Below, piece after piece: positions 13,271-29,980 of a stretch of DNA of 64,000 nt. The DNA lies in the NCBI GenBank assembly GCA_025558095.1, contig JAIVFI010000007.1, positions 1 to 64,000 on the forward strand. The letters are read 5' to 3'. How positions within the stretch are numbered: position 1 is the stretch's first letter; every line of letters starts with the position of its first letter. The notes beneath the pieces were generated by a model, which saw nothing but the letters and a program-made list of their open reading frames with translations, was not told the origin of the DNA and did not search any database. This DNA comes from Hyaloraphidium curvatum SAG 235-1 (lineage: Eukaryota > Fungi > Monoblepharomycota). Both the position numbers and the translations under genes were made by a program.

Positions 13271-13568
13271 GAAGGAGGAGCCCGGGGCCTAGGGGGAGGG
13301 CGCGGCGAGCCAGGCGAGTAGCGGGTATGCGTGGGAGGAGGCGGTGGGCCCGCAGGGCAAGCCGGAGATGGTGGCCAAGGTGTGAATGGGGGATGATCGG
13401 CATCGGATCGTGCGGAGGCCGCACTCGATCTGGGATGACATATGAATGGCATTGAGCCTGATAGATCTGGTGATTCGCACTGGAGCTATCTCGCTGGGGG
13501 CGTGATGGGACCGGGTCCGAAGGATGCTGGGCAGCCGCCGACGTGAAGGCGACCTGTCCCCGCGGCCA
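13271..13568 (+). repeat. Degenerate inverted copy of the 3' end of the HIPL1-like gene plus downstream intergenic DNA (partner ~29792-30086)
   Basis: Encodes KEEPG*..ASQASSGYAWEEA..KPEMVAKV* and continues gatgatcggcatcggatcgtgcggaggccgcactcga, matching the reverse complement of 29.8-30.1 kb. Confidence 0.9.
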
Positions 13569-13802
13569 TCCGTGCGGCAACATACGCTATGAATTTTGCA
13601 TCGATCTATGCTGCCCGATATCCTGCTGATTGGAGGTCCGAAGAAGTCAGTCTTTTGATGGGTCGTAGAAGTGATGGGTCGTTCGACGGGAGTCAGTCGG
13701 TCACGATCGCAACCGCCACGCACCAGCCGTACTTCTCCGTCACGGCCGTTCCGTCCCGTTGCCCCCCCCGGACGGTCCCCGGGCCCCGCTACGCAGACAA
13801 CG

Positions 13803-15050
13803 ATGTCCGAGAGTGCGCAGGAGTGCGCTGCTCGGGGCTTGAAGTTCTACACCGGCGATGGCGTGGCCAAGAACCTCGTCGAGGCCGCGAAGTGGTTCCG
13901 CAAGGCGGCCGACAAGGGCCACGCCGCCGCGCAGCACAACCTCGGATTCCTCTACCTGAACGGCGAGGGCGTGCCGCAGGACCATGCCGAGGCCGCGCGG
14001 TGGTACCGCAAGTATGCCGACCAGGGCAACGAGCACGGGCAGAACAATTTCGGACGCTGCTACGAGAACGGCTGGGGCGTGACCAAGGACTATGCCGAGG
14101 CCGCGCGGTGGTACCGCAAGTCTGCCGACCAGGGCAACGCGGACGCGCAGTACGCCCTTGGGTTCCTGTACGCGCGCGGACTGGGCGTGGCCCAGGACTA
14201 TGCCGAGGCGGCGCGGTGGTACCGCAAGTCGGCCGACCAGGGCAACACGTACGCGCAGAATAGCCTCGGAGTCCTCTACCGGGACGGTCAGGGCGTGCCG
14301 CAGGACTATGCCGAGGCCGTGCGGTGGTTCCGGAAGGCGGCCGACCAGGGCGACCGGAACGCGCATGTCCGCCTCGGATTCCAATACGAGAAGGGCCAGG
14401 GCGTGGCCCAGGACTATGCCGAGGCCGCGCGATGGTACCGCAAGGGGGCCGACCAGGGCCACGCTGTCGGGCAGGACAACCTCGGAGGCCTCTACCGAAA
14501 TGGATGGGGAGTGGCCCAGGACCATGCCGAGGCCGTGCGGTGGTTCCGGAAGGCGGCCGACCAAGGAAACGCGTACGGGCAGAACAACCTCGCACGTTGC
14601 TACGAGGACGGCAAAGGCGTTGCAAAGGACCTGTCCATGGCTCTGGAGCTGTACCGGAAGGCGTCGGCGCAAGGTCACGAGCAAGCGACGGCCGCCGCAA
14701 AGAGGCTGCAGGCCACCGGTGTGGTCCCGGATCGACAGCGGCAGGACGACGCCGCCGCAGCCGAGCGGAACCGCGCCGCTGCCGAGGCACGCCGGAGGCA
14801 GGAAGCTGAAGCCGAGGCGCGCCGCCGTCGGGAGGAGGAGCTGGCGCACGAGCGGGAGAAGCGGGCACCGGCTGGAGGACTTCCTCCGCAGGTCATGCAG
14901 GCCATCTTCGGCGGCAAGCGTCCGCCGAGACCCGGCAATGTGCAGGACGACGTGTGGTCGCTGGTGGAGTCGTGCTGGCCGAAGGAGATGAGTGCCCGGC
15001 CGACGATGGCCGAGGTGGCCTGGGAGCTTGTCCGGATCAGGGGTCGCTAG
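13803..15050 (+). CDS. Sel1-like repeat protein (8 x 36 aa) + coiled coil + orphan protein-kinase C-terminal tail
   Basis: Repeats xxxAQxxLGxxYxxGxGVAQDYAEAARWYRKAADQG. Tail KRPPRPGNVQDDVWSLVESCWPKEMSARPTMAEV corresponds to kinase subdomains X-XI only. Confidence 0.88.
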   Translation: MSESAQECAARGLKFYTGDGVAKNLVEAAKWFRKAADKGHAAAQHNLGFLYLNGEGVPQDHAEAARWYRKYADQGNEHGQNNFGRCYENGWGVTKDYAEAARWYRKSADQGNADAQYALGFLYARGLGVAQDYAEAARWYRKSADQGNTYAQNSLGVLYRDGQGVPQDYAEAVRWFRKAADQGDRNAHVRLGFQYEKGQGVAQDYAEAARWYRKGADQGHAVGQDNLGGLYRNGWGVAQDHAEAVRWFRKAADQGNAYGQNNLARCYEDGKGVAKDLSMALELYRKASAQGHEQATAAAKRLQATGVVPDRQRQDDAAAAERNRAAAEARRRQEAEAEARRRREEELAHEREKRAPAGGLPPQVMQAIFGGKRPPRPGNVQDDVWSLVESCWPKEMSARPTMAEVAWELVRIRGR

Positions 15051-15290: not shown

Positions 15291-15778
15291 AGCACCATCG
15301 CCCGGTCCAGACCCGATCGGCCCCGCCCCTTGTCCCTTGTCGCAAAACCACCCGCGCTCCCCTTCGCCGACCCGGGGCCGGCGACGCGGACCCGTTCCCC
15401 GCGAACGGAATCCGGATCGCGCAACTTTTCCGCCCCAGCCGCCGCGCCGTGGGTCGCTGGCGGGCGGGTGGGGCGGCCGGCTGCGGCTCAGACGACTGGG
15501 CCCTGCCGACAAAGGACCCTTCCGGCCCGACCCGATGGCGGGGTTCTCCGGGCCTCCCGGGCCTCCAGAACCCCGGGAACGGCAGCGCGTGCCTCCACAA
15601 GTGGTTGCCATGGTCGGGCGGGCCGGCGGAGCGGCAGCGCCCGGCGAGGGGAGGGCGGTGGTTCCAAGGTTCGGGCGGGGCGATTATTGCGCGAACCCAG
15701 GGTCGGGGCCCGGCGCCGACAGCGTCGGCCGGCCCCACCGCAACACCCGCCCGCCCGCACCCGCCAGGGCGCCCCGCG

Positions 15779-18700
15779 ATGCGACTCCGCGCCCCGGGCG
15801 AACCGTGCGGAAGCGAGGCGACGGGCGGTGGGCGGCGGGCGCCGCCGCCGGGGCCGCGGCGGCGGCGGCGGCGTGACGGATCCCTGGTGCTGGCCGCCGT
15901 GCTCCTTGCGCTCCTCGCGATCTGCTCGCTCCTGGCGCCGATCTCGGCGCGGGAGGCGTCCGCAGACGATCTGTCGGACCCGGACCCGCCCGCCGGCCGG
16001 CACTCCCTGGGGGAGCGCACCTCCGACGACCTCGAGTGCCGCCAGCTGCGGCGCCGCTGGCTGCCCGCCGTCTTCCGGCGGCACACGACCTGCACCGTCA
16101 CCTCGTGCCGCAGAACTGGCTGGAAGACCCGCACCCTCGGCAAAGTGGCCACCGTCAAGCGCACCGCCCGGAGGACGACCACGCTCGTGAAAACAAAGGT
16201 CGCCGTGAAGCGGCAGACCCTGGCCCTCATCAGGGCGGTGACCTCGGTCGGCCTGCCCGATTTTGCCGCGCTCCCCAGCTCGGCCGTCTACGCCGTCAGG
16301 AGCACGTCCACCGTGCTCGTTCCCGGGCCGACGAGGACCAAAACCGTGGCGGCAAACACGGACCTCGCCACCGTGCTGATCAGGACCACCTGGACGCCCA
16401 CGACGACCAGGTTCGTGACCCAGCGGATGGATCTCGAGTGCCCCACCGTCGTGCCGGCCGCCCGGCGGCGGATGGAGGAGGCGCAGGTGGACTCTGATGC
16501 CTCGCTGGCTACCGGCGAGCTGGAGCTCGACACCGAGGAGGAGATCGGGCTTCCGCTCATCAACGTGACCGTCGCCCGCCGCTCCGACGCCGAACCCGGC
16601 CCCGATCAACCCGACGTGGACGCGAAACCCGACTCCCTGGAACGCCGCACCAACTTCGACTCTTCCTGCGCGGCCGTCTGCACCCTCCGCAAGTCCATGT
16701 GCTGGCGCACCCGGTGGAGCACGCGCACGTGGACCCGCACCTCGTGGAAGGTCTCCTGGCGCACGCTGCGGAGGACCAAGACCGTCTCGAGCACGCGGCT
16801 CGTGCAGCTCGCCGGAACGGGAGGTTGCGCGGACCCGACGGGGACGATGGCCGTGGCGACCTGCTCGTTCGCCAGCCAGGACAGCAGGGTGCAGGCCACG
16901 CTGTGGGCAGCTGGATCGCGCGCCCGCAACGGTCCCGTGCTCACCCCGCGTTCGCTTGCAGGACGACGATCGTGGTCACCGCCACCTCCACCCAACCCGC
17001 CCGCATGCGCACCGTCTTCAGCCACAACGCCGTCGCCGACGCACCCACCGTCCACTCGACCATCACCGCACCCCGCACCGCCTCGTACGGTCCCCGCCAC
17101 CCGCGCCCGCATCCATCCGCTGACCCCGTCCCCGCACCGCCAGGGTCACATCCACCGTCGCCGCCTCGGACGTCTTCTGCATGCCGCAGCTCAACCCCCC
17201 CTCGTACCGCGCCACCTCGTGCGGCATCCTCGCCGTGCCCGCCGCGCTGGGGCTGCTGCGGGGGGCGGTGGGGTCGGGCGTGTCGGCGGTGGCGGGGGTG
17301 GTTGCCAGCGAGCGCGGGTTCCGGGTCGAGATCGGGGAGGACGGGTCGTTCACGTACGCGCCTGCGGCGAGGAGCGGGTTCGTGGGCACGGACAGGTTCG
17401 CGTTTTCCGCCGTCAATGCGGCGGGAAACGCGGCAGATGGGGTCGCGGAGGTCGTCGTTGAGGCGTGCCCGGCGGTGGGTTCAGCGACGCGCCTCCGCCC
17501 GCGAGAGCGGCTCTGAGACGCCAAAAATGCCGCCGTCCAGACTTCCACGCGCACGCACAGCTCTCCCGCCACGCCCACAGGGGCCATTGGAGGACGCGTA
17601 TTCGTCGACGCTAACCTTAATGGCGTGGACAATGGAGGTCGGTTGGCCGCTGTCTGTCGTTTTGGGCGCGCTGAACGGTTCCGTTCCACAGAGACGGAAA
17701 TCCCGATGGTGACGGTCATTCTGACCGGCATCGACAAGTTTGGCAATTTCGTGAACCGGAGCACGACGACGGGGCCCGATGGGAGGTACCAGTTTGAAGG
17801 CCTGGTGGGTTCCGCTCCGCCGCGTCCCCAAGCCTGCCTTCTGACCCTTCCCCCCCCCCCCCCCCCCTCGCAGTGGCCCGGCAACTACACGATCGACTCC
17901 GTCAACCCCGCCGGCCTTTCAGACACCCCGCAAGGACAGATCGGGAAGCTCCTCGTGTCGCTCGGCGACGGGCAGCGCATCCTCGACCAGAACTTTGGCA
18001 AGGTCGCGTCCTCGCCCAGCACGACCCCTACCGCGTCCCGCAGCCGCTCACGGACCCCCACTTCGACTGCCGTGCCGCCGGGCAGCATCTCGGGGCGGGT
18101 CTACCTCGACGCGGACCTCGACGGCAAGGACGGGGGCGAGCCGGCCGTCGCGGGTGTGGACGTCGTGCTGGTCGGCACCGACCACCTCGGCCGGCCCGTG
18201 CAGATGACGGCCACCGCGGGCGCGGACGGGAGCTACCGCTTCGATGGCGTGCCGCCGGGGACGTACGGCGTTTCGTGCGCCGCGCCGGCGGGCCACGCGT
18301 TCTCGCCCGCGGGGCCGCAGGGCCAGGTTCAGGGCATCCTGCTGGTGCCCGGGGGCTCGGAGGCCGCGGATTTCGGGATGTTGCGCGTGGCGAGCACCAC
18401 CTGGACCATCGCGACGGCCACGCGCTCCCGGACCAGCTCGACCTTCACCGTGCGCGCCGAGCTCGGCGGCAGGATCTTTGTGGACGCCAATACGGACGGC
18501 GTCGACAATGGCGAGCCCGCGATCCCCGGCGTGACCATCTTTGTGACAGGCACGGATGATCAAGGCAATCCGGTCAACGTCAGCACCACCACGGCGCAGG
18601 ACGGTACCTACATCTTCGAGAACCTGCGCCCCGGCACCTACACCGTCACCCCCGTCGTGCCTGCCGGCTTCGTCAGCTCGCCCGGTGGGCCGACGGAAGT

Positions 18701-21700
18701 GACGCTGTCGCTCGTGGACGGGGACAACAAGCAGGACGTCGATCTGGGCTTCGTGGCCATGACGTCGACCTCCTCGAGCCTGACCACCGCCACGCGCTCG
18801 CGGACCAGTTCGACCTTCACCGTGCGCGCCGAGCTGGGCGGCAGGATCTTTGTGGACGCCAACACGGACGGCGTCGACAATGGCGAGCCCGCGATCCCCG
18901 GCGTGACCATCTTTGTGACGGGCACGGACGACCAAGGCAATCCGGTCAACGTCAGCACCACCACGGCGCAGGACGGCACCTTTGTGTTCGAGAACCTGCG
19001 CCCCGGCACCTACACCGTCACCCCCGTCGTGCCTGCCGGCTTCGTCAGCTCGCCCGGTGGGCCGACGGAAGTGACGCTGTCGCTCGTGGACGGGGACAAC
19101 AAGCAGGACGTCGATCTGGGCTTCGTGGCCATGACGTCGACCTCCTCGAGCCTGACCACCGCCACGCGCTCGCGGACCAGTTCGACCTTCACCGTGCGCG
19201 CCGAGCTGGGCGGCAGGATCTTTGTGGACGCCAACACGGACGGCGTCGACAATGGCGAGCCCGCGATCCCCGGCGTGACCATCTTTGTGACGGGCACGGA
19301 CGACCAAGGCAATCCGGTCAACGTCAGCACCACCACGGCGCAGGACGGTACCTACATCTTCGAGAACCTGCGCCCCGGCACCTACATTGTCACCCCCGTC
19401 GTGCCTGCCGGCTTCGTCAGCTCGCCCGGTGGGCCGACGGAAGTGACGCTGTCGCTCGTGGACGGGGACAACAAGCAGGACGTCGATCTGGGCTTCGTGG
19501 CCATGACGTCGACCTCCTCGAGCCTGACCACCGCCACGCGCTCGCGGACCAGTTCGACCTTCACCGTGCGCGCCGAGCTGGGCGGCAGGATCTTTGTGGA
19601 CGCCAACACGGACGGCGTCGACAATGGCGAGCCCGCGATCCCCGGCGTGACCATCTTTGTGACGGGCACGGACGACCAAGGCAATCCGGTCAACGTCAGC
19701 ACCACCACGGCGCAGGACGGTACCTACATCTTCGAGAACCTGCGCCCCGGCACCTACATTGTCACCCCCGTCGTGCCTGCCGGCTTCGTCAGCTCGCCCG
19801 GTGGGCCGACGGAAGTGACGCTGTCGCTCGTGGACGGGGACAACAAGCAGGACGTCGATCTGGGCTTCGTGGCCATGACGTCGACCTCCTCGAGCCTGAC
19901 CACCGCCACGCGCTCGCGGACCAGTTCGACCTTCACCGTGCGCGCCGAGCTGGGCGGCAGGATCTTTGTGGACGCCAACACGGACGGCGTCGACAATGGC
20001 GAGCCCGCGATCCCCGGCGTGACCATCTTTGTGACGGGCACGGACGACCAAGGCAATCCGGTCAACGTCAGCACCACCACGGCGCAGGACGGTACCTACA
20101 TCTTCGAGAACCTGCGCCCCGGCACCTACATTGTCACCCCCGTCGTGCCTGCCGGCTTCGTCAGCTCTCCCGGCGGGCCGACGGAAGTGATGCTGTCGCT
20201 CGTGGACGCGGACAACAAGCAGGACGTCGATCTGGGCTTCGTGGCCATGACGTCGACCTCCTCGAGCCTGACCACCGCCACGCGCTCGCGGACCAGCTCG
20301 ACCTTCACCGTGCGCGCCGAGCTCGGGGGCAGGATCTTTGTGGACGCCAACACGGACGGCGTCGACAATGGCGAGCCCGCGATCCCCCGCGTGACCATTT
20401 TTGTGACGGGCACGGACGACCAAGGCAATGCGGTCAACGTCAGCACCACCACGGCGCAGGACGGCACCTTTGTGTTCGAGAACCTGCGCCCCGGCACCTA
20501 CACCGTCACCCCCGTCGTGCCTGCCGGCTTCGTCAGCTCTCCCGGGGGGCCGACGGAAGTGACGCTGTCGCTCGTGGACGGGGACAGCAAGCAGGACGTC
20601 GATCTGGGCTTCGTGGCCATGACGTCGACCTCCTCGAGCCTGACCACCGCCACGCGCTCGCGGACCAGCTCGACCTTCACCGTGCGCGCCGAGCTCGGGG
20701 GCAGGATCTTTGTGGACGCCAACACGGACGGCGTCGACAATGGCGAGCCCGCGATCCCCGGCGTGACCATTTTTGTGACGGGCACGGACGACCAAGGCAA
20801 TCCGGTCAACGTCAGCACCACCACGGCGCAGGACGGCACCTTTGTGTTCGAGAACCTGCGCCCCGGCACCTACACCGTCACCCCCGTCGTGCCTGCCGGC
20901 TTCGTCAGCTCTCCCGGGGGGCCGACGGAAGTGACGCTGTCGCTCGTGGACGGGGACAGCAAGCAGGACGTCGATCTGGGCTTCGTGGCCATGACGTCGA
21001 CCTCCTCGAGCCTGACCACCGCCACGCGCTCGCGGACCAGCTCGACCTTCACCGTGCGCGCCGAGCTCGGGGGCAGGATCTTTGTGGACGCCAACACGGA
21101 CGGCGTCGACAATGGCGAGCCCGCGATCCCCGGCGTGACCATTTTTGTGACGGGCACGGACGACCAAGGCAATCCGGTCAACGTCAGCACCACCACGGCG
21201 CAGGACGGCACCTTTGTGTTCGAGAACCTGCGCCCCGGCACCTACACCGTCACCCCCGTCGTGCCTGCCGGCTTCGTCAGCTCTCCCGGGGGGCCGACGG
21301 AAGTGACGCTGTCGCTCGTGGACGGGGACAGCAAGCAGGACGTCGATCTGGGCTTCGTGGCCATGACGTCGACCTCCTCGAGCCTGACCACCGCCACGCG
21401 CTCGCCGACCAGTTCGACCTTCACCGTGCGCGCCGAGCTCGGGGGCAGGATCTTTGTGGACGCCAATACGGACGGCGTCGACAATGGCGAGCCCGCGATC
21501 CCCCGCGTGACCATTTTTGTGACGGGCACGGACGACCAAGGCAATGCGGTCAACGTCAGCACCACCACGGCGCAGGACGGCACCTTTGTGTTCGAGAACC
21601 TGCGCCCCGGCACCTACACCGTCACCCCCGTCGTGCCTGCCGGCTTCGTCAGCTCTCCCGGCGGGCCGACGGAAGTGACGCTGTCGCTCGTGGACGGGGA

Positions 21701-24700
21701 CAACAAGCAGGACGTCGATCTGGGCTTCGTGGCCATGACGTCGACCTCCTCGAGCCTGACCACCGCCACGCGCTCGCGGACCAGCTCGACTTTCACCGTG
21801 CGCGCCGAGCTCGGGGGCAGGATCTTTGTGGACGCCAACACGAACGGCGTCGACAATGGCGAGCCCGCGATCCCCGGCGTGACCATCTTTGTGACGGGCA
21901 CGGACGACCAAGGCAATCCGGTCAACGTCAGCACCACCACGGCGCAGGACGGCACCTACATCTTCGAGAACCTGCGGCCGGGGACGTACACTGTGGCTGC
22001 AGTCACGCCGGACGGCTACGTGAGCTCTCCCGGGGGGCCGATCGACATTCCCAATGTCAGTCTCGCGGACGGAGATGTCATGCTAGACAAGGACCTGGGG
22101 TTCGTGCTCGAGACCTCGACCACCTGGACTGTGACAGTTTCGGAGTCGGAAACACCGACCACTTCTCTCACGGCGACTTCGAGCACGAGCCTGACGATCA
22201 GCCTGACCACCGAGACATTGGTTGGTTGCTTTGCGGAGGCGGGAATCAACTGAACTCACGCGACCGTTTGCAGACCACGGAGACTTCGAGCACCACGTCC
22301 GAATCTCTCACCGCGACGCCGACTAGCACGTCGGAGACGCAGAGCCGCACGGCGACGACGTCGGAGTCGCAGAGCTTGACGGCCACGACCAGCGAATCTG
22401 CTTCTGCAACCGCAACGACTTCGGAGTCGCAGACCCCGACGGCAACAACCTCCGAGTCCCAGAGCTTGACAGCGACGACCAGCGAGTCTGCTTCTGAAAC
22501 GGCAACGACTTCGGAGTCCCGGAGCTTGACGGCGACGACGTCGGAGTCGGAAACACCGACCACTTCTCTCACGGCGACTTCGAGCACGAGCCTGACGATC
22601 AGCCTGACCACCGAGACATTGGTTGGTTGCTTTGCGGAGGCGGGAATCAACTGAACTCACCCGATCTTTTGAAGACCACGGAGACGTCGAGCACGACGTC
22701 CGAATCTCTCACCGCGACGCCGACTAGCACGTCGGAGACGCAGAGCCTCACGGCGACGACGTCGGAGTCGCAGAGCTTGACGGCCACGACCAGCGAATCT
22801 GCTTCCGCAACCGCAACGACTTCGGAATCGCAGACCCTGACCGCAACGACCTCGGAGTCACAGAGCTTGACAGCGACGACCAGCGAGTCTGCTTCTGTCA
22901 CGACCAGCGAATCTGCTTCCGCAACGGCAACGACTTCGGAATCGCAGACCCTGACCGCAACAACCTCGGAGTCGCAGAGCTTGACAGCGACGACCAGCGA
23001 GTCTGCTTCTGTCACGACCAGCGAATCTGCTTCCGCAACGGCAACGACTTCGGAATCGCAGACCCTGACCGCAACAACCTCGGAGTCGCAGAGCTTGACA
23101 GCAACGACGAGCGAAAGCCAGAGCTTGACCGCAACAACCTCGGAGTCGCAGAGCTTGACAGCAACGACGAGCGAGAGCCAGAGCTTGACCGCAACAATCT
23201 CGGAGTCGCAGAGCTTGACAGCAACGACGAGCGAGAGCCAGAGCTTGACCGCAACGACCTCGGAGTCGCAGAGCTTGACAGCAACGACGAGCAAGAGCAA
23301 GAGCTTGACCGCAACAACCTCGGAGTCCCAAAGTCTGACGGCGACGACCAGCGAGTCGCAGAGCTTGACGGCAACGACCAGCGAATCTGCTTCCGCAACC
23401 GCAACGACTTCGGAGTCGCTCACTTCGTCGACTTCGCTCACCGTTTCGCTCACGACGGAGACGCAGGTTGGTATCGTTCTGATGGTCGTTTTGGACTGAG
23501 AGTGCTGAGAAGAGTTGATTCCCGCAGACGACCGAGACCGTGACCTCGAGCACGACGTCCGAATCCTTCACAGGGTCGACGGTACGATCCTTTGCCTTGC
23601 TGCGGAAGTCGTGGCGGTTCTGATGCTTTTAGGGTCCCAGACCTCCGGGTCGGCAACACCGAGCTCGACTTCGGTGACCCTGACCACGGAAACGCCGAGC
23701 TCCACCTCGGAGACGCTCTCCAGCACCTCGTTTACGCCGTCCAGCTCGACGCTTTCCAGCACCTCGGAGACGCTCTCCAGCACCTCGTTTACGCCGTCCA
23801 GTTCGACGCTTTCCAGCACCTCGGAGACGCTCTCCAGCACCTCGGAGACGCTCTCCAGCACCTCGTTTACGCCGTCCAGTTCGACGCTTTCCAGCACCTC
23901 GGAGACGCTCTCCAGCACCTCGGAGACGCTCTCCAGCACCTCGTTCACGCCGTCCAGCTCGACGCTTTCCAGCACCTCGGAGACGCGGACGACCAGCTCG
24001 CTGACAGCCACAACGAGCGAGAGCTTGACCTTGACGGCCACGACGTCGGAAACCCCGAGCAGCAGCTCGCTGACCGCTACGACTTCGAAAACGCCGAGCA
24101 GCAGCTCGATGACAGCTACCAGCTCGTCGGAATCCATCACTTCGTCCACGGTGAGCTGCGTCGGGCTTGACTTGTTGGCTACGGTGCTCAACGCCCGTCC
24201 ATAAGCTCACGCAGACGAGCTCGTCGCTCACCTCCTCGACGACGTCTCGAACGACCGTCTTGCCGGACCTGCCTCCGCCGACGACCACCTTCCGCACGAG
24301 CACCTCGCGGTCCGAAACCCGGACGAGCATGACCTCCTCGCGCTCCGAAACCCGGACCGCCTCGCAATCCGAGACCCGGACCCGCTCCTCGACCTCCCTC
24401 AGCCTCACGGCGACCCGCACGAGCACGCAGAGCCGCACGCTCACCTCGACCTCGGCCAGTTCGACCTGCATACCCCCCGAGGGCGACTGCCTCGTCGACG
24501 AGGACTGCTGCGACCACTTCTCGGGGGGAAGCACCTCCACGACGGGCGGCTCGGTATGCTACGAGGCGAGCGCAGGCAGGAAAGTCTGCTCGGGCCCCAA
24601 GTGCTCCTCCGCCGACTTTTTGCAGTGCGGCCTCTGCCTGGACAACTGCGGCACGGCCAAGAAGATCGCCGTGTGCAGCGCGTACAACGCCACGCTCAAC

Positions 24701-24894
24701 AACGCTGAGGGGACGTGCGACAACGTCAGCGCAAACATGGGGGGCGGGCGTTGCCCGGGAACGATGGTGTGCTGCTTCGTCGGTGGGTGCCTTGCTCCGC
24801 CCGTTTCGGGAAACCGGCGGCTCACGCGCGCTCCGCCGCAGTTCCGTCGGTTCCCGCGGATGCGAACGGCGACTGCCCGTACGCCCTCATGTGA
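15779..24894 (+). CDS. Giant multi-exon surface/adhesin-like protein: basic Thr/Trp modules, Ig/Big_9-like domain, 12 SdrD-B-like domains, Ser/Thr mucin stalk, Cys-rich C-terminus
   Basis: Hydrophobic signal LVLAAVLLALLAICSLLA; DGSFTYAP..GFVGTDRFAF; repeated GGRIFVDANTDGVDNGEPAIPGVTIFVTG..TTTAQDGTYIFENLRPGTY..DLGF. Introns include 22221-22273, 22622-22674, 23467-23527, 23582-23640, 24151-24214, 24783-24841. Treating this as one gene is inferred from in-frame splicing. Confidence 0.78.
18417..22105 (+). repeat. Coding tandem array, 10 x 372 bp (124 aa), SdrD-B-like domain + Ser/Thr linker
   Basis: ELGGRIF motif starts at 18459, 18831, 19203, 19575, 19947, 20319, 20691, 21063, 21435 and 21807. 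Units are nearly identical; the last diverges in its 3' half. Confidence 0.97.
22340..23985 (+). repeat. Coding minisatellites of the mucin stalk: 30-bp SESQSLTATT units, then SSTSETL/SSTSFTPSSSTL units
   Basis: Repeated tcggagtcgcagagcttgacagcaacgacg and tccagcacctcggagacgctc. Confidence 0.9.
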
Positions 24895-25136
24895 GCGGGC
24901 GCGCGGGCGGGCCTCGGAAGGTTCGGATGGAAGGAAGCCGCTCGCGGGGGACGGGCTTCCCGAAGCTGCGGCATGGGACGGAACGTGCGGGGCGGTCGCA
25001 GCACGGCTTTTGTTGGATATCGTAGACGAGTACGGCATAGAGCCATTAGATGCTGCCTCTTTCGCGATATCTACAACGGGAACTCCCCTTCCCACTTCCC
25101 GTCCATACTTAACCCTTCTTTCCCGCCCCTCGGCGA

Positions 25137-25867
25137 TCAGAGCGCGGCGAACGCGCCCGCCACTGCGGCCAACGCCGCGATCGCCCCCGCTTCCACCCTC
25201 CCCGCGCCCGCCGGCCTCGCGGTCGATGTCGGCGCGGCAGGGCCCTGGGTGGTCGTCGGCTGCGCGGTGGGAGCCACGGCCGTCGTCCTGCCAACGAATC
25301 GTTCAGCAATCGCCGTCGAGGGCGGAAGGAAGGGAACCCACGTGGCTTCGGGCGCCTCGGTGGTCCTGCTCAGCGCGGTAAGGATGCTGGCCACGCTGCC
25401 GGAATTGATCTGACGGCAGGCCTCCTGGAAGTCTGCCAGGGTTTTGTAACCGAATTCGTCTGCTCGCGAGAGAGGAGGAACGGGGTTGATCAGTGAGCAA
25501 GTCGGAGGGCGTGGCGAGAGGGGTAGGTACCGCAGGTGGAGATGCAGCCGACCGCCTGCGCCGAGTTATCGCCTGTCCCCATCACGCACAATCAGTCTTC
25601 CATCGTCATTGATCAGCACCGCGGCGGGAACCCACATGCGCACTTTGCCGGCGCCAGCGGATCCGAGTTCCCCTGCATGCACCCCGCGACCTTCATACCA
25701 AAGTTCAGGCAGGCGTCGGTGGCGCAGCCGTTCTGCCGCGGCTGGATGCGCAAATGGGGGGAGGCCAATGCGAGGGCGGCGGCGTTGAGTTCGTCCGTGC
25801 GGGAGGCGAGGGCCAGGGGGGCGAAGAGGAGGATGGAGGCCAGAAGAAGGGCCGTTGCGTGCTTCAT
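25137..25867 (-). CDS. Small secreted 8-Cys (CFEM-like) Thr-rich GPI-anchor-type protein
   Basis: Signal MKHATALLLASILLFAPLALA; GCATDACL..GC..DPLAPAKCAC..CISTC..AC; Thr/Ala/Pro stalk; hydrophobic tail AIAALAAVAGAFAAL; 3 introns. Confidence 0.7.
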
Positions 25868-26579
25868 GGGAAGAGAATGTTTGGGGAGGTGTTTCTGTTG
25901 CTGTGACTGGTTGCTGTCGAGTGCGGGTTGTCCTGCAGGGAGGAGGGCGCGAGGTGTCAACGCCGTTCCAGAACATCCGGCCCGTGCAGCCCATTGGGCA
26001 GCCAATCCCCCGCACTGCCGAGCACTCGAGAGCATCGCGCGCCGCCGCATTGGTCGTGCACTGGGGCATTTGCCCCCGCGGGCGGCCCCACTCCGCCGCC
26101 GCTCGCCCCGACGCCAGCAGCCGTCCCCCCGCACGCAGCCCGTCTCGGGCCCTCTTCCCCGCTCCAGGCACACCCCGCGCACGCCGGGTAGCGTACCTTT
26201 CCCGCTCTCTCTGCCTTGCTTTCGTTCGTGCGTGAATGTGATTCGGTGTGACTGGGTTGCGGCAATGGCTGTGCGCCATAGTCGGATCCCCGTGATTTCC
26301 GCTGTGATTCACAAACTTGCCACCGCCACGCCCGGCCGGAACGGGAACTTCAAGCCGCAAAAAAAGGGAGGTTGGCGGAGGTGGACGGCATGTGCACGGC
26401 AAGGTGGATAGATGGCTCGGGTGGGAACGCGGCCCGGCCGGCGGGCTTACACGGATCGCGCGGATCAATAAGCAACTCCCCCCCCTTGGTCCCCTTCCTC
26501 CTCCCCATAGACAACCCCCTTTCGATAGATACTCAGCTCCCCTCGGCAATCCGATGCCCGATCCCCCCAGATCCGGCCA

Positions 26580-27888: not shown

Positions 27889-29792
27889 TCATACAGCCAA
27901 AGCGCTGTCCTTCCGGTCGATGACCGCCTTCAGCTCGTCCGCAACCTGCCCGAACGTGGGCCTCTTGCCTGGGTCGGAATCCCAGCACCGCCTCATCAGG
28001 CCCCACAGCGCCTCGGGGCACCGCTCTGGCCGCTCTGGCCGGAAATGTGGGTCCGTCCTGATCCGCTCCCCGAGCATCTGCGGCGACAGACCCTCGTCGA
28101 GCATCTCCATTTCCAAGGGGGTTTCGCCCTCGGAGAGGAACTCCCACATCGTCATGCCGAAGGCGTAGACGTCCGAGGGCCGGCCGCGGCGTCCTTCCCA
28201 CACTAGAATCGCCGTTGAGAATCGCGATACGAAGGGACAGCCGCGTGATGCCCACCTTCAGGCGCCATGTAAGATGGTGTGCCCCCCACGAACATGGTCT
28301 GCCTCGTCGACCCCGACCGGATCTTGCTCAGCCCGAAATCGGCGACCTTGGCCACCCCGTTCTCGTCCACCAGCACGTTGGCGCCCTTGAGGTCCGAGTG
28401 CAGGATCGGCATCGGCCTCGAATGCAGGTGGTTCATCCCCTTGGCGATCTGGAACAGCACGTCGGCGACGGTGGCGGGGTCCCAGCGCTTTGTGGTGAGG
28501 TAATCGGTGGCGGTGCCGTTGGCCATGAAGCGCGTGACCATGCAGAAGGGCTCCTTGCACCAGCCGATGAGGGGTTGGACTGCCGATCGCTCGTCAGCGA
28601 CAGCGGGTGAGGCAAGGCGGAACAAGCGCACCGTTGTCGTGGTAGGGCAGAGCTCCCCACACCGTCATCTCCTGCTCGAAATCCGCCCTCTTCCTTTCCA
28701 GCAGCCGCGGCGTCCCCGCCATCTTGACGAGCTTCATCGCGACGCGGGTGTGCTTCTGGTACAGCCCCTCGAACACCTCGCCGAACGCGCCGGAGCCGAG
28801 GTACTTGCCCCTCTCCAGATCGGCGGGGAGGATCTCGTACGCCCCGTGGGGAGACAGCCCTCCTGGGGTGCCCGGCGAAGGCGGTGGAGCCGTTCGGATG
28901 TTGAGCTCGGCGAGCTCCTTCTCGAGCTTCAGCCTCTCGGCGAGCAGCGCGAGTTCCTTGGCCTTGGCCTCGTGCTCGAGCTCCGTCCGCCGGCGCTGCA
29001 GCTCGAGCTTCTCGCGCTCGTGCGCGAGGTCTTCATCCCGGCGGCGGCGCGCTTCGGCTTCCGCCTCTTGCTTCCGACGCGCCTCGGCCGCCATCCGGTT
29101 CCGCTCGGCCGCCTCGGCTTCCTCCCGCTGCTTTCGCGCCGCGGCTTCCGCCTCCGCACGCCGACGCTGCAGCTCGAGCTTCTCCCGCTCGTGCGCCAGC
29201 TCCTCCTCCCGGCGGCGCCGGGCCTCGGCTTCCGCTTCCTGCTTCCGGCGGGCTTCAGCAGCCACGCGGATGCGCTCGGCTGCGGCGGCCTCGCCGTTCG
29301 CTGCATCAATGGCTGATTGCGCCCTCTTGATGCCGACCATCGCATCCTGGTCACCGCCGGCCGATGCCTTCCGGTACAATTCCAGCGCCGTGGATAGATC
29401 CTTGGGAACGCCTTTGCCGTACTCGTACATGTAGCCGAGGTTGAACTGCCCGTACGCGTTGCCCTGGTCGGCCGCCTTGCGGTACCACCGCACGGCCTCG
29501 GCATGGTCCTGGGCCACACCCTGTCCGTTCTCGTAGCAGAGTCCGAGGTTGAACTGCGCGTTCGCGAGTCCCTGGTCGGCTGCCTTGCGGTACCACCGCG
29601 CGGCCTCGGCATGGTCCTGGGCCACCCCCTGTCCGTTCGCGTAGAGGAGTCCGAGATTGAGCTGCGCGTCCGCGAGTCCCTGGTCAGCCGCCTTCCGGTA
29701 CCAACGCGCGGCCTCGGCGAGGTCCTCGGCCACGCCCTGTCCGTTCTCGTAGAGGAGTGCGACGCTAAACTGCCCGCCCGCGTGTCCCTGTT
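27889..29792 (-). CDS. Sel1-repeat (4) + duplicated coiled coil + TKL-type non-RD protein kinase; 5'-truncated, possible pseudogene
   Basis: GSGAFGEV, VAMK, HSDLKGANVL, DFGLS, GTPSYMAPE, SDVYAFG, CWDSDPGKRPTF; two introns. No ATG precedes the first repeat (the ORF-track start is GTG in intergenic-derived DNA). Confidence 0.85.
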
Positions 29793-29980
29793 GGCCGTGG
29801 GGAAAGGTCCCCTTCGCGCCGGTTGCCCAGCGAACGGGCACCCCTCCTTCCTGGTCTGATTATACATCCAGCGAGACAGCTGCAGTGCGAATCCCCAGAT
29901 CTATCAGGCTCAATGCCATACATATGTCAATCCCAGGTCGAGTGCGGCCTCCGCACGATCCGATGCCGATCATCCCCCGT

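Follow-up and report, generated by a model that had tools for sequence, protein, structure and literature searches.

The 64,000-nt stretch of DNA analysed here (the window; Hyaloraphidium curvatum SAG 235-1, Fungi, Monoblepharomycota; GenBank assembly GCA_025558095.1, contig JAIVFI010000007.1, positions 1 to 64,000) has a G+C content of 61-73%. On its forward strand, 15779-24894 fits a single gene model whose 12 exons join into 2,819 codons free of internal stops, and its ATG at 15779 and TGA at 24892-24894 agree with the gene bounds given in an earlier note on this DNA. With moderate confidence, we consider the locus to be a single nuclear 12-exon gene whose product is a secreted, extracellular, fibre-like glycoprotein of ~2,800 residues. 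From the N-terminus, the protein would consist of a signal peptide, a basic, cysteine-containing N-terminal region, a cadherin/Big_9-like immunoglobulin (Ig) domain, a rod of 12 SdrD-B domains (B1 to B12), a Ser/Thr-rich stalk and a module with 15 cysteines.

Exons were picked from a frame plot of G+C at third codon positions (GC3), with frame shifts placed at short GT..AG intervals. A GC3 of 0.86-0.98 marked a single forward frame at a time throughout 15779-24894. The 11 introns are all GT..AG, 53-69 nt long, and a frame check found similar donor and branch-like signals in them. Similarity searches were run per exon, and exons were joined solely for the length and the stop count. The features of the gene are listed below, where the C2 paralog is the publicly modelled H. 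curvatum protein DFJ74DRAFT_727665 (KAI9033426.1) on contig C2, P0122 is a metagenomic homolog and the public model is the annotated protein at this locus.

15779..15949 (+): start codon and predicted cleavable signal peptide, 57 residues (direct reading; cleavage predicted from the -3/-1 rule)
15779..16902 (+): exon 1, signal peptide and basic N-terminal region (GC3 0.86-0.98; RNA contigs 16006-16185 and 16199-16689)
16903..16961 (+): intron 1, 59 nt, GT..AG, phase 2 (joint in RNA-derived contig)
16962..17084 (+): exon 2, TTIVVTATSTQPARMRTVFSH... (RNA contig 16962-17085; GC3 0.90; C2 paralog 50% over 26 residues)
17085..17143 (+): predicted intron 2, 59 nt, GT..AG, phase 2 (GC3 frame change; splice signals; collinear with C2 paralog)
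17144..17474 (+): exon 3, cadherin/Big_9-like Ig domain, ...EDGSFTYAPAARSGFVGTDRFAFSAVNAAGN... (Big_9 23.2 bits; C2 paralog alignment)
17475..17540 (+): predicted intron 3, 66 nt, GTGGGT..CCAG, phase 0, with an in-frame stop inside (direct reading, frame check)
17541..17637 (+): exon 4, Ser/Thr linker, then first strand and calcium loop of B1, ...GGRVFVDANLNGVDNG (58 nt in RNA contig, joined to exon 5)
17638..17691 (+): intron 4, 54 nt, phase 1, within B1 just before the loop Glu (RNA joint)
17692..17804 (+): exon 5, middle of B1, ETEIPMVTVILTGIDKFGNFVNRSTTTGPDGRYQFEGL (RNA contig; SdrD_B E 0.005 alone)
17805..17873 (+): intron 5, 69 nt, phase 0, within B1 (RNA joint; also spliced in public model)
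17874..22220 (+): exon 6, 1,449 codons, end of B1, B2 and B3-B12 (SdrD_B E 9.7e-155; GC3 0.82-0.96)
18417..22041 (+): tandem array, 372-bp unit (124 codons), no intron (Tandem Repeats Finder; translation)
22221..22273 (+): intron 6, 53 nt, phase 0 (spliced in public model, ...TETL|TTETSS...; direct reading)
22274..22621 (+): exon 7, Ser/Thr-rich stalk, 116 residues, 63% Ser+Thr (direct reading; within public model)
22622..22674 (+): intron 7, 53 nt, duplicate of intron 6, acceptor TTTTGAAG, splicing predicted (duplication; downstream coding periodicity and homologs)
22675..23466 (+): exon 8, Ser/Thr-rich stalk, 30/60/114-bp repeats, TSESQSLTATT... (direct reading, repeat search)
23467..23527 (+): predicted intron 8, 61 nt (direct reading, frame check)
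23528..23581 (+): exon 9, 18 codons, Ser/Thr-rich (direct reading, frame check)
23582..23640 (+): predicted intron 9, 59 nt (direct reading, frame check)
23641..24150 (+): exon 10, Ser/Thr-rich stalk, 57/78-bp repeats, 71% Ser+Thr (GC3 0.90-0.92)
24151..24214 (+): predicted intron 10, 64 nt (direct reading, frame check)
24215..24782 (+): exon 11, last 75 stalk residues, then Cys-rich module from 24440 (GC3 0.88-0.94)
24783..24841 (+): predicted intron 11, 59 nt, phase 1 (joined CCFV-VPSVPADANGDCPYALM compared with the P0122 C-terminus CCFAVPSVPSDIYGNCPSSL)
24842..24894 (+): exon 12 and TGA 24892-24894, hydrophilic end (direct reading, frame check)

Intron 3 was set at 17475-17540 because the first nine bases of its donor (GTGGGTTC and the next base) are those of intron 5 and because the C2 paralog keeps the Cys directly preceding the site. 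A 401-bp direct duplication at 22140-22897 copied an exon end, an entire 53-nt intron and the start of the next exon, and the second intron copy, intron 7, has the acceptor TTTTGAAG compared to GTTTGCAG in the first.

Transcription was assessed in the one public run that holds the locus (X1), which is stored as contigs and so displays joints, not transcript ends, strand or level. RNA-derived contigs of this run skip 16903-16961, 17638-17691 and 17805-17873, each GT..AG, and one contig spans exons 4, 5 and 6 with 0 mismatches and carries an Illumina adaptor at its end. These joints establish that the gene is transcribed and that both introns within B1 are real; the gene is spliced and expressed. 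A further RNA-derived contig, at 15519-15705, lies upstream of the ATG and lacks coding periodicity; it would be either part of a 5' untranslated region of at least 260 nt or the tail of an upstream gene that ends at 15050.

The public model of the locus, hypothetical protein DFJ74DRAFT_489667 [Hyaloraphidium curvatum], is 1,608 aa long and splices introns 5 and 6. It begins at a Met in exon 5, inside B1, and ends by reading into intron 7. It thus has none of the parts that precede B1 (signal peptide, N-terminal region and cadherin-like domain), little of the stalk and no Cys module. Since an RNA contig joins exon 4 to exon 5, its start was called too far downstream, and the public model is truncated at both ends. 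The ~2,800-residue model presented here corrects it.

The predicted signal peptide has an Arg-rich n-region, a 19-residue hydrophobic core (LVLAAVLLALLAICSLLAP) and the cleavage site ISA|RE, and this layout recurs in the C2 paralog (AAA|EE) and in a homolog on Logan contig L010 from another organism (AAA|EQ). The N-terminal region that follows comprises 316 mature residues with 9 Cys, 49 Lys+Arg and recurring [RK]-T-x-T runs. Exon 1 aligns to the beginning of the C2 paralog with 45-47% identity, and across this paralog and the L010 homolog the region is conserved at 33-47% with its cysteines kept. Pfam (exons 1-2) and PDB profile searches of the region gave no meaningful match. An exhaustive HMMER scan of 1.84 billion representatives returned 3 matches only, namely the C2 paralog, the L010 protein and a low-complexity sequence; the last, an Echinococcus protein (P0124), matched through low-complexity repeats and was set aside. 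On these comparisons, the N-terminal region is specific to this lineage. The domain in exon 3 (DGSFTYAP..GFVGTDRFAF) matched Big_9 with E 1.4e-4 and 23.2 bits, slightly below the cut-off of 23.6. Its counterpart in the C2 paralog passes the Cadherin_5 cut-off (28.9 vs 26.5 bits) and aligns to exon 3 with 36% identity (E 3e-17), in keeping with the single Big_9/cadherin-like domain described in the earlier note.

In the profile search that the earlier note had proposed, SdrD_B (PF17210) matched the open frame 17625-22250 in 11 stretches with E 9.7e-155 and 506 bits (cut-off 29.7). Single SdrD_B domains score 47-59 bits in a genome scan. The twelfth domain, B1, is divergent and split over exons 4, 5 and 6. 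A D-x-[ND]-x-[ND]-G-x-D-x-G-E loop was read directly in 12 of 12 domains: DANLNGVDNGE in B1, DADLDGKDGGE in B2, DANTDGVDNGE in B3-B11 and DANTNGVDNGE in B12. At the loop positions, these residues follow the consensus drawn from 118 bacterial domains. Tandem Repeats Finder placed the ten domains B3-B12 in an array at 18417-22041 with a period of 372 bp, 9.7 copies and 97% matches, and a Ser/Thr linker of ~22 residues follows each of them. Among PDB sequences, exon 6 best matched the solved SdrD B domains (E 5e-8), with UafA also among the best. The SdrD_B match spans profile positions 2-79 of 112, and both 'FVD...' and '...DVDLGF' are present and may place Asp on the first and last strands, the match ending at position 79. 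The B domains contain no Lys/Asn isopeptide pair (compare PMC12617251). Thus the 12 loop-bearing domains, the introns inside the first, divergent one (placed here at 17638-17691 and 17805-17873) and the intron-free array of ten units, all reported in the earlier note, were recovered here, and the RNA joints and gene model bear out its view of an intron-containing fungal gene for a giant secreted repeat protein. A minus-strand open frame of 1,287 codons (18048-21911) runs antisense to the array; strong third-position G+C occurs only in the forward frame, and we therefore attribute the minus-strand frame to the repeat and to G+C content.

The stalk, encoded by exons 7-11, is a stretch of 643 residues that is 64% Ser+Thr, acidic and built of short tandem repeats. 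This fits the mucin-like stalk that had been noted after the B domains; its composition is Ser/Thr/Glu-rich rather than that of Ser-Asp (SD) repeats. The C-terminal Cys module, encoded from 24440 onwards, has 15 Cys in 114 residues. No Pfam or PDB profile match and no usable match in the protein atlas was obtained for it. Direct reading of the C-terminus (...CCFVVPSVPADANGDCPYALM) found a hydrophilic, Cys-rich end with no tail of the glycosylphosphatidylinositol (GPI) type and no LPXTG motif. Copies of the module were found on contig C8 (61-63%) and in two environmental proteins (P0121, 59%; P0122, 48%), always after a Ser/Thr stretch and behind differing N-terminal domains. The C8 copies belong to two tandem genes at C8:842,300-845,100 (L007, minus strand), in which the module lies at the end and is split by an intron. 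Each C8 gene encodes a signal peptide, an unclassified domain of ~130 residues (...FCVDYRTSWSARPEVYVTP...), a Ser/Thr/Pro linker and the Cys module, and P0121 and P0122 have the same layout.

At least 50 SdrD_B matches were found on seven H. curvatum contigs, one of which (C54) is a near-identical copy of this locus; the SdrD_B loci include contigs C2, C4, C15, C34 and C44. The C2 paralog resembles the present gene in its N-terminal region (47%), its cadherin-like domain (Cadherin_5), its SdrD_B array (domains 61% identical), its Ser/Thr stalk of ~400 residues and its introns at both of the B1 intron places. It differs in having at least 17 B domains (17 SdrD_B in the public model), an intron inside the array unit, at the place of intron 4, and further B domains after the stalk. 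At the C2 locus (~1,104,600-1,116,400, minus strand; L001, L008 and L009), a 432-bp unit is repeated ~4 times and a 781-bp two-domain unit ~6 times. Since these units contain a spliceosomal intron, the intron was amplified together with the exon. The C-terminus of the public C2 model looks to have been read in the wrong frame, and the locus goes on with Ser/Thr exons and a final B domain, which matches the final B domain of the L010 gene. Contig L010 (54% G+C) encodes the N-terminal homolog (33%) and, directly downstream, a frame with two cadherin-like domains, Ser/Thr stretches and B domains. A neighbouring metacaspase on L010 shares 67% identity with its H. curvatum counterpart and no more than 41% with those of the next named fungi, indicating that the L010 organism is a relative of Hyaloraphidium. 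By sequence, the C2 paralog looks like the ortholog of the L010 gene. A second SdrD_B subfamily, at C15:257,300-261,400 (L004) and C44:68,500-70,400 (L006), lacks the calcium loop (VDTTGQPGV instead of VDANTDGVDNGEPAIPGV) and forms its own supported clade. Contig C54 was rejected as an independent paralog and lends no independent support: C54:1-4604 (L002), on a 20-kb contig, is a 99.3% copy of 21923-26500, the 3' part of the locus including the downstream flank, with 30 gap positions, of which some cause frameshifts in the Cys-rich module. This copy represents a haplotig, a broken allele or an artefact of assembly or sequencing.

A close comparison is with the B domains of staphylococcal Sdr proteins (SdrD, SdrG; PDB 4JDZ). 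The fungal domains share with them a PF17210 score well above the cut-off, the calcium loop motif, what may be the Asp residues of the first and last strands and the arrangement as a tandem extender between a head and a low-complexity region (PMC6232131). In contrast, the C-terminal part with further calcium ligands is shorter in the fungal domains, and the gene is eukaryotic and spliced and lacks an A region, Ser-Asp repeats and LPXTG. The A region (N2-N3) of microbial surface components recognizing adhesive matrix molecules (MSCRAMMs) gave no Pfam match in exon 1 and no PDB profile match. The 'MSCRAMM/Ig modules' of the earlier note therefore stand for the B domains, but not for an MSCRAMM head, SD repeats or LPXTG. 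Bacterial SdrD B-like proteins (e.g. MEQ1858296.1, Chthoniobacteraceae) likewise have long arrays with an equal loop and 29-40% identity, but they lack introns and carry different accessory domains, among them DUF11 and Big_1.

Among eukaryotes, Dictyostelium colossin A consists of repeats of the bacterial Cna_B domain and is a listed candidate for ancient transfer from bacteria (PMC3188802), and the colossins have expanded into a lineage-specific family (PMC3188802, PMC4334915). Compared by description, colossin A is likewise a giant eukaryotic extracellular protein with many CnaB-type repeats, and the family described here is also lineage-specific and bears introns. The two differ in lineage (Amoebozoa vs Fungi) and in annotation (Cna_B vs SdrD_B), and no mucin stalk, Cys module or N-terminal region of this kind has been reported for colossin. 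The Als, Flo and Epa adhesins share a signal peptide, a non-repeat N-terminal region, tandem repeats and a long Ser/Thr-rich stalk with the present protein, which, however, lacks a GPI signal and has bacterial-type Ig domains preceding the stalk. PA14, Flo5 and the Als Ig-like head were negative in the Pfam search of exons 1-2. With no known Flo/Als head and no GPI signal, the earlier description of the protein as unlike the Flo/Als adhesins holds. Our full-text literature searches turned up no account of such SdrD-B proteins in fungi.

The staphylococcal B domains are known for their calcium dependence and strength, and the calcium affinity of SdrG B1 is sub-nanomolar (PMC6232131). By analogy, each fungal B domain may bind calcium in its loop and between Asp residues of the two terminal strands; since there is no Lys/Asn isopeptide pair, calcium would act as the clamp. 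In fresh water that contains calcium, such binding would give the rod stiffness and mechanical strength. Fresh water generally holds far more calcium than a sub-nanomolar affinity such as that of SdrG B1 needs. The stalk is probably O-glycosylated and extended. Since the Cys module recurs behind differing heads and always after a Ser/Thr stretch, we take it as the wall-proximal end, which would probably hold the protein in or on the cell wall, while the N-terminal region would be presented outward as the binding or contact end. We give this orientation about an equal chance of being right or wrong.

SdrD-B domains, which in staphylococcal adhesins have been studied as the strongest protein fold known in mechanical terms, are used here as a rod by an early-diverging fungus. 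They belong to an expanded family in which spliceosomal introns lie inside the domain and, in the C2 paralog, within the unit that the array repeats. If the proposals on calcium and anchoring hold, the protein would represent a third route, besides GPI and Pir, to long surface fibres in fungi, and the second eukaryotic case, after the colossins, in which a bacterial-type Ig repeat makes up a giant extracellular protein. Both ends, the N-terminal region as well as the Cys module, are unclassified and offer concrete targets for structural and binding studies.

Several observations weigh against the reading of the locus as a single gene for a secreted fibre. RNA joints are confined to introns 1, 4 and 5, the part sampled being the 5' part. 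Contig depth in X1 rises ~30-fold, from ~4 over exon 1 to ~119 over exons 4-6, and G+C accounts only partly for this step; a shorter, commoner transcript that starts internally may lie behind it. Intron 7 has the weaker acceptor (GAAG), and the public model halts inside this intron. With respect to the protein, AlphaFold2 models of the N-terminal region (4-row alignment; predicted local distance difference test score, pLDDT, 34) and of the Cys module (5-row alignment; pLDDT 49) were too poor for a fold search, and neither end has an assigned fold or ligand. The Cys module was not found in the C2 paralog or in the relative's gene, and for this reason it is not a general anchor of the family. 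Finally, we infer location, calcium binding, glycosylation and adhesion alike.

Among the alternatives, the one that survives best accepts the same protein and changes its role. It could be a structural coat, sheath or matrix component (wall fibrils or autospore-holding material) and not an adhesin or tether, with the B rod as a tough spacer lacking a specific ligand-binding head, a role of the kind proposed for colossin A in the slug. H. curvatum is a freshwater fungus, and Hyaloraphidium lives freely in the plankton, with no evident host for it to attach to. Neither end of the protein contains a known adhesive domain in the Pfam, atlas and PDB searches; the 97%-identical, recently expanded array fits selection on length; and colossin A has been described as a structural slug protein of Cna_B repeats (PMC3188802). 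However, the conservation of the N-terminal region at 33-47% with its cysteines kept suggests a specific function there, and fibrillar adhesins are likewise laid out as head, stalk and terminal module. We therefore regard a purely structural role as possible but not probable. A bolder proposal, which we consider unlikely, is that the protein belongs to a class of its own lineage, with anciently captured, calcium-clamped bacterial SdrD-B rods, a lineage-specific N-terminal head and, in this gene, the previously undescribed 15-Cys module as a wall anchor common to several unrelated secreted proteins. If true, such an anchor would be a fungal mode of attachment in a chitinous wall that is unlike GPI and Pir linkage.

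A second alternative concerns the gene itself. The locus might hold more than one gene, or a major internal start, so that the 1,608-residue public model would be right for the abundant product. The start of that model in exon 5, its stop in intron 7, the weaker acceptor there and the ~30-fold step in depth between exon 1 and exons 4-6 would all fit. However, the abundant contig reaches upstream of the public start, with 58 nt of exon 4 joined to exon 5, and RNA also joins exon 1 to exon 2. The public start also halves B1 and leaves no signal peptide. Contig depth is a poor measure here, and it reads zero in two G+C-rich bins inside exon 6. The paralog and the relative keep the order of parts: the C2 paralog is publicly modelled as one protein of 3,064 residues with an equal order, and on L010 the N-terminal homolog lies directly upstream of the frame with cadherin-like, Ser/Thr and SdrD_B parts. 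Coding periodicity is strong downstream, where direct reading of the stalk exons found no start codon with a signal peptide, and P0122 ends in a sequence (CCFAVPSVPSDIYGNCPSSL) that fits the exon 11-12 join. We consider several genes or a major internal start to be quite unlikely, and retain the single 12-exon gene.

The origin of the B domains was addressed by similarity searches and a tree. Over a query region of 430 residues, the best non-self matches (the 119 others among the 120 listed) were bacterial where named, with 29-40% identity, and came from Verrucomicrobiota, Planctomycetota, Chloroflexota, Actinomycetota and other groups; 0 of the 120 were from eukaryote-only collections. One array unit matched only SdrD_B clusters in the protein atlas, bacterial or untyped. 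The taxonomy of best matches, a check that the earlier note put forward for a single unit, is bacterial where named, yet the array unit is closer to a domain of the C2 paralog (61% identity) than to the best bacterial domain (49%). The tree contained 16 eukaryotic and 118 bacterial domains, each bacterial row being the best-scoring domain of a match and near-identical fungal copies being omitted. Two eukaryotic clades were supported, each with an SH-like approximate likelihood ratio test (SH-aLRT) value of 96: one of C7, C2, C4 and the relative, and one of C15 and C44. When all 16 eukaryotic domains were held as one clade, the likelihood was better than that of the free tree (approximately unbiased (AU) test, p-AU 0.80). 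No bacterial donor stood out, and none of the 118 bacterial domains fell inside the fungal clade. The relative's domain grouped with one specific paralog domain, indicating that the family diversified before the two organisms split.

This is an old, intron-bearing family of this fungal lineage: it occupies several loci, its paralogs have intron positions in common, its codon usage is that of the host and the relative has a homolog. Its B domains are of overwhelmingly bacterial type, and any bacterial acquisition is ancient. An ancient transfer from bacteria into this lineage is plausible from the sequence comparisons and, if it took place, would predate the split between Hyaloraphidium and the relative. 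Vertical descent from an older eukaryotic stock may also be considered, the fungi compared being H. curvatum and its relative; SdrD_B has also been reported in diatom chitinases and thraustochytrids (PMC12028343, PMC8917795). The claim of the earlier note that the domains were horizontally acquired was not supported, given the closer paralog domains (61%), the single eukaryotic clade that the data allow, the shared introns and the lack of a donor. That the B-domain block is a recent bacterial transfer or an assembly contamination, as the bacterial identity of the other 119 listed matches (29-40%, where named) and of the atlas neighbours with taxa might suggest, is extremely improbable and was discounted because RNA-confirmed spliceosomal introns lie inside the domains, no bacterial domain in the sample is as close to these as the fungal paralogs are, the tree and AU test favour a single eukaryotic clade and a homolog occurs in a related organism of differing G+C content; a GC3 of ~0.9, like that of the rest of the gene, and paralogs on several large contigs also speak against it.

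Rfam and tRNA scans of the whole window gave no match. The gene is flanked by inverted Sel1-repeat gene segments that are 71-89% similar, at 13436-14862 and 29007-29929, ~14-16 kb apart. A Sel1 tandem repeat with a unit of 108 bp (36 codons) lies at 14000-14663.

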